A stretch of 63,224 bases of DNA, the filler included, from Lenisia limosa (taxonomy: Eukaryota > Protista > Breviatea): assembly GCA_001655205.1 (NCBI GenBank). It is 12 parts of 12 records of this genome, joined end to end, with 100 filler letters (N's around TTAATTAATTAA, not from the genome) between each part and the next. Parts side by side here need not be neighbours in the genome. Positions count along the whole stretch, not along the records: positions 58,177 to 59,484 come from LPNZ01003225.1; 11 more parts are not named here. One strand, written 5' to 3'. This document shows, piece by piece, positions 2,546-59,626 of this stretch. Within the stretch, counting starts at the first letter, position 1. Every line of letters starts with the position of its first letter. Position numbers and translations under genes: made by a program. Below the pieces are notes generated by a model that worked only from the letters and a program-made list of their open reading frames with translations, did not search any database and was not told the DNA's origin.

Positions 2546-4482
2546 CCCCGATTGAGGGTCCACTCCAAATTCTTTTCCCCAAATAGTAGAGAACACATTT
2601 TACAGAGTAAACAAAACTTATACGACGCCAATGAGTTTGCTTGAATCTAAAAAGGTTAACATCAGTCATAAAAAGTGAAAACAACGCAAACCAACGCACC
2701 AAGGTAATTATTTCTAGAAAAGACCTAAAACAATTTGATGAAGTAAAAGCTACAAGTCACTGACATGAATGTTGGGGTGATTGTATTAATAGTTCATGGC
2801 AAGAGTGTTCGTGGTCAAAACATTAAGGTGTTCCGTGAGGAGGTCCTCAACGATTTGAACGAAACCATGTGCATAATTATAATACAAAACAACTAAAAGG
2901 AGACAGCATTAGAATAAACCTCCATAAAAATCAGTCAGAAATAAAGCCTAAAAAGCATACGAGAGGGACAAGTGCCTTGGCATTGCAGTCGACGGTATCT
3001 ATGATGGGGCGAGTCTCAGACGTGTTTTCGCGCTGGCCAATGTGATACCTCAAAACCTTGCAGTTGAACACACCAAGGGTCAGCGAGTCTTAAAAATACC
3101 ATCCCCACGCCTAATGATGTGATTTATTTATAAAACAATAAGCAGGGGCTCCAACTCCACATCTCTCATTCTCTTCCACACCTAGTAAATTATAGATAAG
3201 ATACAAGAGCTAATACTATACCTTCTTCAGGGCCTCCAAGATTGCATCTCGACATGACTCATGTTGCCGTTGCCCATAAACTCGATCTTCCTTCGGATTG
3301 AGAATGAAGTGGGTTCCTCTGCAAAACATCTTCCAAGAATTGGCAAGGTACGTTTGGAAGAGGGAAACAAATAAAAGGACAGTTTGATGTGCTATTTTGG
3401 TTTATATGATACAAATATCCCCCATGGGGAGATAAAAGAGTGTGAGAAGGTATACATGGTTGAAAAGGAACACTCTAAACTTTCTGAACTCCAAGTTTGC
3501 TTTTAAGTTTGCTACTACTGGTACCAGAGGAAGGTTTGATCAACTAAATCGCCTACATACCAGTGAAAAGCATCCGCCAACTGCATCTTGTTTTGATGCA
3601 TAAATGCACTAAAAACCCGTCGTGTACGACTGCTTTCATGGTGTTCTTACAAGACTTGCCCTGAACTTTTGATACCTTCAAATACTGCTTCACATAATTC
3701 AGTGGAAATACCACTAAGGGTTTTCCCCTTCCATTTAACTTCTTGTGTACAGAGACAGAAAAGGAATCAAAAATAAGACAAAAAATGTTACAAGGTACAT
3801 TGTCACGAGTTTTGGGCTGTTCCAATTTTTGGCCCTTTTTTTAGAGAGCTTTCTTGGAGCTTCCACGATGCCAATCAGAGTTCAGACGAATATAAAGTGT
3901 TAGAACTACTCAACAGTAACAGTACTCCCCCTCCTCAAACAGCCATTTGTGGCCATTATACCCTAGGTAAGGCTGCAGTCCATCCTTCAAATAGGGATTT
4001 TGAAAAATGTTGCACTAGGTTTACTTAATCAATGACATGGTTGAGACAATTTTCGAGGTATTATTTTCAAAACTGCATATACTGTGACCTTTTTGCCAAA
4101 ACTCTCCAGGTAACTGAACCACATTAAGTGAAACATTTATTGAGGACATGAAGATCAGTATCTAATAAAGAAACCTAATGGAAAGTTCAAGTAGTTGGCT
4201 TTATTTTTATAATGTTGATGCAATTGAATGAGGAAGTTGCATTCTCAATTTTCCTCCATGTCCATCCCCATTGAACGACTTGGGGGCAATTTGTCGTCCA
4301 GAAAGGGTCGCTGTGTCTTCTATATTGGGGACACAATGCGTACAGAAAGCCACGTGTACAACAGAAGTTGGTTTTGGTTCATTTTTTTTTCTAGAATAGT
4401 TTTTTATCATATTTTTTTTTTCCAATCGTAACAGTACAATGGGTTGTGAGAGGACAATGCTCACAGCTTCAAAAGCGAAAAC

Positions 4483-4987: not shown

Positions 4988-5148
4988 GTAATCAACCATT
5001 GAACCGCCATATGATATATTTCATTTTGTTTCATTTAAAATTACTCTTTTAGACTTTGCGTCCTCACCAAAACGACAAAGAAAGATGCGTTGTCCCACTG
5101 TGATCGTCGATCCAAGCTTTCCCGATCTTCCCCAAATCGACCCTGTTA

Positions 5149-5217
5149 TGCCACAAATTGGCCACAAATCGACTCTACCATGCCACAAGTCGACACTACT
5201 ATGCCACAAATCGACCT
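5149..5217. repeat. ~21-bp tandem repeat (ATGCCACAAATCGAC...)
   Basis: Three to four imperfect units read directly. Confidence 0.75.
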
Positions 5218-6149
5218 TGATATACCTCAAAATTAATAACCAAGCCCTGAACCTTCAAAGCCCGATTTTGTCGGTATTCAAGACTATACTTACCCCTTTT
5301 TCCCAGAAGCGGCTGCACCTCATATGAAACCTCTTATCAGAAGCCTAGTTGATAATATCAAAGGGACTTTTCAACCTCAATCTGAAATGTCACATGCTGG
5401 TTATTTTCAGAAGACTCAACTAAAGCATTGGAGGAAAGCCTTTGAAGCTTAGTAGTATGAAAACTTTTTTCAAAAAGGTTGTTGAATTTGAATCTTTGTA
5501 TTGATCGTGTTCATACTTACTCCATTGTTGCCCTTCCATGCTCTGCTTGGAGACAAGAGTAAGACTGCCTTTGTGAGTCTATTGGTCGAGGCTGTGAGCT
5601 GGGTTTCCTTACTTTAAATAAATTGGAATTTTATTTGGTCCCTTCTGAGGCCAGCCATTAACATACTAGACCACAGTTCAACGCACACACCAAGCGAAGA
5701 CAGTTCCCAATAGAATCTTTTCAAAAGGTTCTGGATGATGGGTATGTTGATTGAATGCAAGGTTGAGTTTATTATTAATATAACCTTGATTAAGCGATTT
5801 GATCAGGAGAACTCGTCAGCAATGGATTGATTTAGGTTCACATCTACCAGAAAATATCGTTATTTATCGAGAATTTGACGAGTTCAGTCTCTTTTTTTGA
5901 ACAAAGAAATCTGAACGGACCTAGAAGTGACACGTCATCACGTCGTGATTTTTACCCAGAACTTGGGTCAAAATCGAATCTACTTTCATTATTTACGGTG
6001 AAATTGCGTAAAAGTTTACATACTCCAAGACTGATAAGCAATTCAATATGATAAAATATTCAGAGTACACCTGAAAACACAGTCAAACAGTTTCCACTGC
6101 CTTCACCAAACTGTCAAAACCGCGCTTATAGTAGTGAGGTGGCGGTATT

Positions 6150-7100
6150 CGTCGAGGGGAATGGTGATAATTTGAGAAGAAGGGCTGGGTACCAACAAGC
6201 TCGTTCAAGCTGCACCAGCTTCATCAGCCGCCATTTGGGAACTTAACGGCAATGGCTGACAAGCCTCCGAAGTAGTTGATAGCTTTCTCCAAAAGCAAGC
6301 CTTCTCGAAGAAGTCTTAACTGGGCTCGAGTGAGCTGCCCAGTCAGAAGTCTCGTTTCTTCGAGTTGCATCAAGGCTGCATGGAGATGACAGCAACAGCC
6401 AACCAAGTCAGGACCATCCCCATTGCCTTCTTTATCGGGATTCATGACGGAAGATACTAGGACCTGGTTTGTCTGACCAGTATGAACCTTGAATTGAGGA
6501 TATGAGAGAGGGATAGTACCGTCGTAACCTTGAATTGAGGATATGAGACAGGAGTAGTACCATCGTCCTAGAACATTATTGGCAGAAAAAAGTCCTAACA
6601 AATAAATAGAATTTTAGAAGTAAACCTCATCATACTCATCAGTAAGGTTTTATGGAACCACATTATCCTCGTCGGCTAGGTCCATAAGTCCCATAGTGGC
6701 GTAGCGAGGCTGGTGCTTTGAGCCTGTTGTCCACCCGTATACCTTAAAGCTGTAAGAATTCTTGAGAAATATTTCTTCAAAACTCACTGTTTTTGCAGCT
6801 CTTCAAGGACATTTGCCTTATTCATGCGGCGGGTGTGACCTCGGCGGGAGCCGGAAGTCAAGCCGCGATGAACAAGGTTCGAATCCAGAGCCACAATGTT
6901 CGTCAGCCGAAGTCGAAGGGTCTCGTAGACTGATGTTTTTATCAACTTTGGGGAAGAGAGGCGAATCCTATGATCGGTTGGGGTTTTGCTTGTGGATATC
7001 CATTAGACTATTTACTGCAGCCTTAACATCAACACCATCCTTTTCAACTCCCAGTTTAAGGTGGTCCCGTGGTCAGAATGTATTAAGGGCTAGGCTTGCA
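6150..7100 (-). pseudogene. Degenerate spliced ORF fragments, possibly DDE/hAT-like transposase remnant
   Basis: Fragments VYETLRLRLTNIVALDSNLVHRG...NVLEELQK, DLVGCCCHLHAALMQ (CxxH-like) and LLREGLLLEKAINYF. In-frame TAG at 6968-6970, stops near 6224, and a 42-bp tandem duplication at 6485-6568. Confidence 0.25.
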
Positions 7101-8017
7101 CTGTTTTTGAAATTGGTCTTTATTTCACTCGGTTTAAACTTATAGTGTATTCAACATGAAATTCCAGCAGTTACGTTGAACAATTTTATTTAGGCGAAAA
7201 AATCCGAGCAATATTCCACTGATTTGGCTGGGTTTTAGGACTTTGGAGAAGGCATTCACTTTTGGTGCTGCGGACCTCGTTCAATGCATAAAGGAGCAAT
7301 GAAGAGAAACTAGAGAAACACGTTTTGTTCCCTTTTCCGGTATATTGAGTGTTAAATAGTTTAAAAGACTATTGAGATTCTGGGGGCTTGCGTGTCATGC
7401 AAGAAAACTTGTTGCCAATGCCTTCCTGAAATTGGAGAAGCTTCCCAATTCTGAGTAAGAGCTCAGCATTTTTACTTAGCATTTCAGCTTAGAATAGCAT
7501 AACTATTGGGATTAAAGTATCTTATGATACTGTATATTTGTTTTATCTTTCCCCCTTGTCTCCATTTAAGGCATTCTCTCCTCATACAGTTAGTCTTAAT
7601 GTTATACTGTCGTCTTACGTTTAACAGACGGCCTCTATCGACGATTCTCGCCTCCCAACCGCTTCCTCTATTCTAATTGGGCAAGTTGAAGCCAAGCTGG
7701 ATCCAGGCCTACCTCTTCCAAGGCTACTTACCCAGCCAAGACTCTCTTTGACGGTATGGCATAATTGTTATTGTGTTCTTGGTTCTCAAGGTTTCACTCT
7801 TGTACCCCTTTTCGAGAGTTGTTGTTTTTTACTGGGTTTAGGACAGCACTACTGACGATACTATTTTCCTCCATTTAACAGTCTGCGGTTGTTGCGGTTT
7901 TCGTATTTATTGCACCTAAGTGCCTCTATATAAAATGAATAACTATTTGTAGAATGGCGTCCAGGTATAATGAACTTTTTTTTGTAACAATTTACTCGAA
8001 CACGAAAATGACAATCG

Positions 8018-57982: not shown

Positions 57983-58432
57983 GTATGTATTGCCCCCCTT
58001 TGCTTGTTCAACATTTTGGATTTAATCAGTCTTCCCACCCTCCATCCCCCATAACAGCAGAGCTGTTTGGGTTTTTNNNNNNNNNNNNNNNNNNNNNNNN
58101 NNNNNNNNNNNNNNNNNNNNTTAATTAATTAANNNNNNNNNNNNNNNNNNNNNNNNNNNNNNNNNNNNNNNNNNNNGGGGGGGGGTAAAAGCGTAGAAAT
58201 ACACGATGTAAGGGAGAAAATGCTAAATGTGGAGTTTTTATTATTTTGAAGACCTTTGAGTAGGGGGGGTTGCAGTAGAGAGAGCCAAGATTTGGGCCTT
58301 CTCATGATTGAGCCCTTACAAACAAAAACTAACCCAGATTAATTGGATAATCTTACCTCCCCAACTTATTCATTAGACGGATCACCCACAGACCAAAGTC
58401 GTGGAGTACAAGTAAGAGGGGTTCCTAAATCA

Positions 58433-58518
58433 AGGCTTCATTTCGTTTTGGGAAAATATTGATAGTTTTCGAGGATTTATCCAGAAATTCAGTCTTGTTT
58501 CGAACCGAAGTGAAGCCC
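58433..58518. mobile_element. Family A MITE-like element
   Basis: AGGCTTCATTTCGTTTT...GAAATTCAGTCTTGTTTCGAACCGAAGTGAAGCCC. Confidence 0.8.
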
Positions 58519-58775
58519 AAAATAGGGAGAAGTGAAGTGGTGTTTATGAAGAGGCATGCAGAAAGTTGTGTTCACAGAGTTGGAAGTATAACTTCCCATT
58601 GGTCTTAAAAATACCGTCGAAATATCAATATTTATCGAGAATTTATCGAGAGATTCAGTCTTGGGCCGTAGGAGAGCCCTAGTTGTAAGTCAAATGAATG
58701 GGAGAATTGATATTTTAAAAGAACATAATATCTCTAGTAATTCCCTGTCACGCTCTTGTGGTTCCCTTAGAACTT

Positions 58776-58883
58776 GGGCTTCACTTTGGTTGAAAAGGAC
58801 TGAATTTCTAGGACTAAATTTTTCGATAAATCATCGAAAACTATTGATATTTCACTGGTCTTTTTCGAACCAAAGTAAAGCCC
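58776..58883. mobile_element. Family A MITE-like element
   Basis: GGGCTTCACTTTGGTTGAAAAGGACTGAATTTC...GTCTTTTTCGAACCAAAGTAAAGCCC. Core-only relics also lie at ~5850, ~20030, ~22020, 50724-50792, ~58610 and ~60300. Confidence 0.85.
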
Positions 58884-58980
58884 GACTTAGAACAATTACA
58901 CACATGAAAAACACGCCAAGCAAAGTATCTTATACCCCCGTCCCTCCCCTTCTTCATCAAAATTTCATTTGTATGCTTGA

Positions 58981-59117
58981 GTGATGGGATGCCGAAGCGA
59001 CTGGCCTAAGCTTTGTTTGTTTTGTTACTATCAACCCTCATTTGTTGTCAGCCAACAGAGTTGATTATGGGCTTTATTTGTTTCATACACTTTCCAATTT
59101 TACTCCCCCCCTCCCAG
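58981..59117 (+). mobile_element. Family B element, best-preserved copy (137 nt, GTGA...CAG)
   Basis: GTGATGGGATGCCGAAGCGACTGGCCTAAGCTTTGTTTG..CAACCCTC..TTGTCAGCCAACAGAGTTGATT..TTCCAATTTTACTCCCCCCCTCCCAG. Confidence 0.9.
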
Positions 59118-59226
59118 TTCGGTTCCAGCACCAACATCATCCCAATTGGCAACAGCGAATCAATTGAAACAACCCCTGGCCCGGCCCAGCTCAACGCCCT
59201 CCCCCCGCTGGTTTCCGCTCCCCTTG
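59118..59226 (+). CDS. Isolated exon of an unidentified gene
   Basis: CAG|...|GTGAGG borders, directly downstream of a family B element. Reading frame not resolved. Confidence 0.35.
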
Positions 59227-59626
59227 GTGAGGGGGCGATATAGGCCTTGCATATCGTGTTTCACTTTGTTTCGGTTCGGTTAGGTCAAACCAATATTTGG
59301 TGAAAATCGGTTTCAAAGTCGATTCGGTATTATTCTCTGTTTGTTTTAACCTAAACCCATGTGTGGTGCCAAAGGATTGATTTTGGGGTTTTATTGATCT
59401 GTGTGAGGGAGTGTAGTACTTCCGTCAATTAGTAATGGGTGGATTAATTTTATAATATACTTTTTATTATGCCCCCATCCCCCCNNNNNNNNNNNNNNNN
59501 NNNNNNNNNNNNNNNNNNNNNNNNNNNNTTAATTAATTAANNNNNNNNNNNNNNNNNNNNNNNNNNNNNNNNNNNNNNNNNNNNTTGGGGGAGGAGGGCT
59601 ACGAATAAGACAGTACCATGTTGGGG

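Follow-up and report, generated by a model that had tools for sequence, protein, structure and literature searches.

The gain and reshaping of introns is an old open question. Among the systems closest to the one described here, the class 4 and 5 introner-like elements known from Symbiodinium and Polarella glacialis have one end that is a 3' splice site, give rise to introns in one orientation only and are present in thousands of copies (10.1101/2020.10.14.339549; PMC9860276). The Micromonas introner elements IE-A to IE-D show high within-family conservation and are found in transcribed regions only, in the sense orientation, which was read as tying their mobility to transcription or splicing (PMC3879977). 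Introners derived from non-LTR retrotransposons make up about 5% of the classified introner families, in a survey that defines introners by similarity at both intron boundaries and filters out elements lying solely within pre-existing introns (PMC12130899). The known relatives of the family analysed below are whole introns, and survey pipelines discard families that match just one intron end.

The window is a stretch of 63,224 nucleotides, fillers included, of Lenisia limosa DNA, and the sequence analysed in it was 58177-59484 (LPNZ01003225.1). The analysis supports the view that the repeat located there, family B, is a strand-locked mobile module supplying 3' splice sites. A sequence-only reading had proposed an introner-like module; its strand locking and its donation of a 3' splice site stand (20/20 copies in sense orientation, acceptor seen in RNA), but its whole-intron 'introner' is not supported by the window copy, for which the donor in use lies 569 nt upstream. 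The 137-nt copy at 58981-59117 is real, with consensus blocks matched at 28/30, 37/40 and 23/25 positions on the + strand only, and nhmmer places it at 58968-59112 (HMM positions 11-154, E=2e-41). With a 10-nt leader (GTATGCTTGA) common to other copies, as seen in the alignments, the copy extends over 58971..59117 (+). X1 is a DNA run (kept as contigs) and X2 a polyA RNA library, both public and from one study. The copy begins with GTGA as had been described; GTGA is not, however, the terminus of the family, since copies align at least 10 nt further 5' (GTATGCTGGAG, window 58971).

The splicing of this intron could be read directly from RNA. A 282-nt X2 contig covers 58377-58411 and 59118-59161 without a mismatch, and its joint (58411->59118, depth 6.9, shorter side 35 nt) skips 706 nt bounded by GT..AG, while RNA contigs start exactly at 59118 and leave the genome at 59227, where the next bases are GTGAGG. 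Hence, the spliceosomal intron is 58412..59117 (+, 706 nt, GTAAGA...CCCAG) and the exon 3' of B is 59118..59227 (+, 110 nt). The exon upstream, 58377..58411 (+, 35 nt), is preceded by an AG at 58375-58376, and the next intron starts with the donor GTGAGGGGG at the RNA loose end and continues to the end of the sequence piece (59228..59484, +). The terminal AG of the window copy is therefore an acceptor in use. Its 3' splice module (59094..59117, +) comprises the branch-site-like CCAATTTTACT, a C7-T-C3 tract and the AG at 59116-59117, and is kept in nearly all copies. B constitutes the last 137-147 nt of the intron. The donor, GTAAGA at 58412, is host sequence located 569 nt 5' of B, and the GTGA of the window copy is not a donor in the sole spliced RNA contig seen. 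A second copy of B, degenerate, reduced to the core and in the same orientation, lies in the next intron (59335..59388, +; BLAST E=8e-4; nhmmer E=0.005 and 0.016). Another RNA contig, from a different locus, matches 58950-58972 and 59043-59066 with 17 other letters replacing the intervening 70 nt; it is a paralogous or deleted B-containing intron present in polyA RNA.

The remainder of the window intron is occupied by family A MITEs in both orientations and by other moderately repeated DNA. The MITE named family A measures ~100 nt and carries terminal inverted repeats of ~20 nt (GGGCTTCACTTCGGTTCGAAA); it occurs in both orientations, at X1 depths of up to 291,000. BLAST with a complete A copy locates it at 58447..58517 (-), 58592-58659 (-), 58813-58882 (+) and 59275-59322 (-), in agreement with inverted repeats I1-I4; copies were also noted at 58424-58520, 58579-58662 and 58771-58893 of the window and at L002:355-456, the latter flanked by an 8-9 nt target duplication (ATATAAGT). 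Other repeats populate the related DNA described below. A second MITE family is a near-perfect palindrome (L001:595-670, L002:2643-2719, L005 ~3940-3990), and its sub-threshold Rfam matches to miRNA precursor models (mir-2363 and mir-1422) most probably arise from the hairpin shape alone. Pogo-like DNA transposons with inverted ends and interrupted or intron-containing transposase genes are present at L001:1420-3760, L002:890-2640 and L003:1-1400; the transposase has almost no relatives among 5.8 billion proteins. The L001 transposon sits inside a B copy, splitting it into a left part (~1355-1417) and a right part (3756-3836). Two further short interspersed repeats, families D and E, were recognised at L002:3030-3075 and L005 ~730-790, and at L001:5148-5185 and 7630-7680, L003 ~2800-2840 and L005 ~6960-7005. 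Family D (…GGAGTTTCxGATTATTCGGTTCGTGATTAG…) lies just 5' of a C-run and B copy in L005, and family E (TATAAGCGTGATGGTGTGGACGGC…) occurs in both orientations. The sequence AAGCGTGATGGTGGACG in L001, considered as a B derivative, was rejected as such and is part of family E.

The abundance of B was estimated from the X1 run. Summed word depth over 58969-59100 was 110,344 / 253,769 / 125,346, against 15.5-21.7 in the single-copy flanks; it was back to 21.7 past 59145 and only 65 over 58925-58968. The abundant unit thus begins near 58970-58985, and the depth implies a copy number in the range of thousands to ten thousand for B, at an identity of at least 90%. Nineteen further copies were obtained from four contigs (L001, L002, L003 and L005) that belong to the same or a related eukaryote contaminating a 'Colwellia' MAG. 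The 22-nt core of B is present in the GTDB 'Colwellia' MAG built from SRR2018010, and L001 (8 kb) and L002 (3 kb) are eukaryotic, carrying GT-AG introns and pogo-like transposons. The presence of these two contigs (CBDLPA010000039.1 and CBDLPA010000069.1) in the public MAG labelled uncultured Colwellia sp. (SRR2018010_maxbin2_1) is bin contamination. L003 (4.2 kb) and L005 (7.2 kb) were reached via protein matches in the ENA assembly ERZ3820729. L003 was found through a transposase and was therefore not selected for B; the protein-space search with the antisense ORF of B gave one match, which led to L005, and that with its sense-frame translation gave no candidate. Neither the B core nor the family A terminus had an exact match in the JGI metagenome contigs scanned, the IMG/VR scan was likewise empty, and exact look-ups of two ORFs from L001 and L002 returned no record. 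The sequence strings are absent from the supplements of introner surveys, and no mention of SRR2018010 was found in the literature.

The sample thus defined is small, 23.8 kb on five contigs including the window piece (W), and partly selected, since B itself led to three of the contigs. Eight copies were used to build an HMM, which gave 20 matches in these 23.8 kb (nhmmer, E<0.05), and the 19 extra copies repeat the pattern first noticed in the window, being sense-only on + and - genes and mostly ending at the acceptor AG. The 20 copies are distributed over five different host genes: a GALK2-like gene, a GPAT3/4-like gene, those of the L005 repeat protein and the L001 low-complexity protein, and the window gene. 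Ten copies are on the + strand (W, L001, L002) and ten on the - strand (L003, L005), all 20 in the inferred sense of their hosts, three of which are + and two -. Among weaker nhmmer matches, 9 were sense and 2 antisense. Family A, searched for in the same introns with its complete copy as a BLAST query, gave 4 plus and 4 minus, and hence the strand lock is specific to B. The statement of the sequence-only reading that all B copies follow the host sense on either strand is thus upheld in an independent set of copies.

The strand of the hosts was established in different ways. That of the W gene was set by RNA. For L003 it follows from a Pfam Acyltransferase match on two collinear minus exons, from tblastn collinearity with the GPAT3/4-like protein P0004 and from a spliced product that aligns gapless with three GPAT3/4 orthologues. 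For L002 it was assigned by a weak, unique PDB match of a + exon to N-acetylgalactosamine kinase at the GGMDQ motif, and for L001 and L005 by open frames and GT-AG alone; Pfam searches on single exons of L001, L002 and L005 returned nothing. In W, L001, L003 and L005 the inferred strand was also the one preferred by a simple dynamic programme for spliced ORFs, but this programme over-predicts and was not relied on.

Most copies, about 13 of 20, terminate precisely at an acceptor that is either verified or predicted, with 0-3 nt from the C tract to the AG (window; L001 3916, 5489 and 5909; L002 218 and 619; L003 4099 and 2603; L005 5975, 4139, 1120, 194 and ~8). The window acceptor is fixed by RNA, L003:2603 by orthologue alignment (...FLPAQ|ERQPEES..., no gap), and ~11 are predicted from reading frames. 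The remaining copies are three upstream members of head-to-tail pairs, three located ~36-80 nt 5' of a predicted acceptor, and one that is cut by the end of the window piece. A C-run of 7-15 nt directly precedes the AG at most B acceptors, with shorter, interrupted C tracts at the others, whereas none of the ~18 B-free acceptors that were read has a long C-run beside its AG. This indicates that the (C)nAG arrives with B and is not the general signal of the host. A significant B copy is carried by 17 of the 35 introns in the gene models, and by 2/6 in the unselected contig L003. In the readable DNA, B was found inside introns only, in host sense only and in the 3' part of the intron; the introns that carry it are between 78 nt and ~3.5 kb long and differ in their 5' parts, which are unrelated; the 3' boundary alone is common to them.

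Some features of the surrounding splice sites deserve mention. Many introns start with GT(R)AG plus a G-run (window 58412-58421 and 59228-59236; L001:432-446 and 6777-6795; several L005 donors), and these starts could pair with the C-run ends of B, bringing the splice sites together. At L002:283-345, where a B-bearing intron starts, an exon end and its donor (GTGTGTCAGTCTCAATGTGGG) form a tandem array of three units. The predicted exon right after B at L001:5490-5503 begins CCGCTGGAGGATGG, nearly identical to the B 5' leader CGCTGGAGTGATGG, and that at L005:5972 similarly begins GCTGG.

The alignments define B as a non-coding unit of ~150 nt whose most conserved part is a core around TGTTGTCAGCCAACAGAGTTGAT, followed by a T-run, GTTTCATAAATTTTCCAATTTTAC, a C-run of 5-15 nt and AG. 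What the copies retain is the 3' tail, namely the branch-site-like CCAATTTTAC, 5-15 C and AG. The matches end at HMM positions 149-155 in 18/20 copies, and start at 6-14 in 6 copies and at 30-105 in 14. Three 5'-truncated copies begin right after a C-run (L003 2687, L005 4261, L005 4313), and internal deletions that keep the tail were found at L005 6098-5976 and L005 4261-4138. Head-to-tail pairs, consisting of a 3' fragment and then a fuller copy, occur at L001 27-82/103-235, L001 3756-3836/3838-3912 and L005 4313-4261/4261-4138. The absence of terminal inverted repeats and of a poly-A tail, noticed from the letters alone at 58981-59117, is borne out there by the sequence and by the inverted-repeat check, and the alignment likewise reveals no terminal inverted repeats between the ends of B. 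No convincing target-site duplication surrounds the B copies of the 23.8 kb; one possible 16-nt flanking pair is that of L001 103-235 (TTTCAACCACTTTCAC vs TTTCTACCACTTTCCA). The GCTGGAG preceding GTGATGGG was rejected as a target duplication, as it recurs 5' of copies with unrelated downstream exons.

The features of the spread of B look retroposition-like. We give an even chance to the reading that B is a non-coding mobile repeat of ~150 nt whose tail is used as acceptor and which spread through an RNA copy of host pre-mRNA or excised introns. B would be copied via RNA made from these templates, and insertions would be placed at an existing 3' splice site or immediately beside it, and occasionally in an exon. 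The (C)nAG of B itself would then take over as acceptor, and B would mostly renew or extend intron ends rather than build complete introns. Such a route accounts for sense-only copies, for 3' anchoring, for 5' truncation, internal deletion and head-to-tail joins, and for the lack of inverted repeats or clear target duplications; the strict sense orientation in particular would be due to the template being host pre-mRNA or an excised intron. Counting against the RNA copy, the analysis saw neither a reverse transcriptase partner nor an internal promoter or RNA intermediate for B, nor any convincing target-site duplication, and we know of no retroposon with a poly-C tail. The exact landing at the AG|exon boundary, the internally deleted copies with both ends and a predicted 78-nt intron that is mostly B also count against it, and the latter two fit an intron-forming element equally. 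Measured against the established classes, B is a family in unrelated genes and supplies at least one functional splice site, as introners do, but does not share both boundaries; it has a variable C tail, 5' truncation and one possible 16-nt target duplication, but no tRNA, 7SL or 5S head as in a SINE (no Rfam match), and its ends show neither the inverted repeats nor a convincing fixed-length duplication of a cut-and-paste MITE. In function, B is an introner-like element of the 3'-site-carrying type, providing only the intron end.

The alternative that survives best, although we consider it unlikely, is that B is a classical introner (GTATGC/GTGA ... (C)nAG) that enters exons as a whole intron, the introns being lengthened later by MITE or transposon insertions and by 5' decay. 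The sense-only orientation and the exact AG|exon junction are expected from such an element, and one-orientation, 3'-site-carrying introners are on record (10.1101/2020.10.14.339549; PMC9860276). Both GTATGC and GAG|GTGA near the 5' end of B resemble donors, so that the extended end is donor-like (GTATGC, then GAG|GTGATGGG). About half of the 35 predicted introns carry B; one of them, of ~78 nt (L005 83-6), is mostly the 3' half of B, and the L001 intron 5090-5489 may begin GTGATG followed by a B core fragment. The genes are, moreover, extremely intron-rich, with exons of 40-160 nt. In the GPAT3/4-like gene (L003:2442-4097, -, exons 40-161 nt), ~210 codons are interrupted by 5 internal introns, and a further, B-bearing intron lies at the contig edge; the same region has ~3 introns in Elliptochloris and 0 in Capsaspora. 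Its two B-bearing positions are absent in both organisms, as are most B-free positions there. The nearest proteins to one of its exons come from a metatranscriptome (71%) and from amoebozoans and holozoans. The organism seems unusually intron-rich. However, the sole RNA-verified donor lies 569 nt 5' of B, and the interval does not consist entirely of later insertions. Intron i6 of L003 opens with sequence unlike B, and its 5'-truncated B copy comes only after 260 nt of non-B sequence. The 5' end is missing in 14/20 copies, and the 23.8 kb contain no B-only intron with exons on both sides.

Next in standing, and doubtful, is a SINE-like poly-C retroposon that enters pre-existing C-rich polypyrimidine tracts, in which case the AG and the splice function would be those of the host and the orientation would follow the strand of the tract. 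The 5' truncation, the variable homopolymer tail (5-15 C), the head-to-tail chimeras, the C-runs at both junctions of several copies and the possible 16-nt flanking duplication of L001 103-235 agree with this proposal. Nevertheless, B-free acceptors have no C-run beside the AG, so there is no pool of targets; none of the 17 sense-strand G-runs of at least 6 nt, each a C-run on the opposite strand, has an antisense B; and the tRNA-, 7SL- or 5S-like head is wanting.

More speculative, and slightly less credible to us than the two preceding proposals, is a process coupled to splicing at the RNA level that left B as its footprint. The RNA of excised introns with a (C)nAG end would be copied back into the genome, through reverse splicing or acceptor priming, with its insertion point precisely at other 3' splice junctions. 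The resulting introns would be chimeric, resident in their 5' part and B in their 3' part, and one family of intron tails would have rewritten at least a third of the 3' splice sites in a very intron-rich eukaryote. Finally, a non-mobile origin, either as a conserved functional intronic RNA (snoRNA- or miRNA-like) whose distance to the acceptor is kept constant or through duplication of genes or segments, is highly improbable: intronic snoRNAs, too, typically lie in sense and at a set place close to the 3' end, but no B copy matches Rfam (E<=1) or shows a tRNA-, 7SL- or 5S-like head, neither a conserved structure nor a known RNA family is apparent, folding is no better than that of shuffles (z -0.39 to +1.35) with 0 compensatory pairs, the X1 depth implies thousands of copies, and the identifiable hosts, GALK2-like and GPAT3/4-like, are unrelated, with the similarity ending at the exon.

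Known introners create complete introns, whereas B gives a working acceptor and usually not a donor. If this holds genome-wide, mobile DNA would have a second way to shape introns, the takeover of their 3' ends, and the exact AG|exon junction without target duplication makes a splicing-coupled route of transposition testable. Mammalian Alu exonisation offers a parallel, as the repeat gives a polypyrimidine tract and an AG; Alu does so in antisense and produces alternative cassette exons, whereas B acts in sense as the regular acceptor of existing exons. A retroposition-type origin is a candidate likeness with the introners derived from non-LTR retrotransposons, although most B copies would fail the filter of that survey (PMC12130899). 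The Micromonas elements, likened to B by their features and not by sequence, are whole introns at unique positions, in contrast to the 3'-terminal, often 5'-truncated and tandem copies of B. The elements of Symbiodinium and Polarella resemble B in the 3'-site end, the single orientation and the thousands of copies; they, however, form the whole intron, are bounded by terminal inverted repeats and take their donor from a 4-nt target duplication, whereas B shows none of these traits and forms only the 3' part of larger introns.
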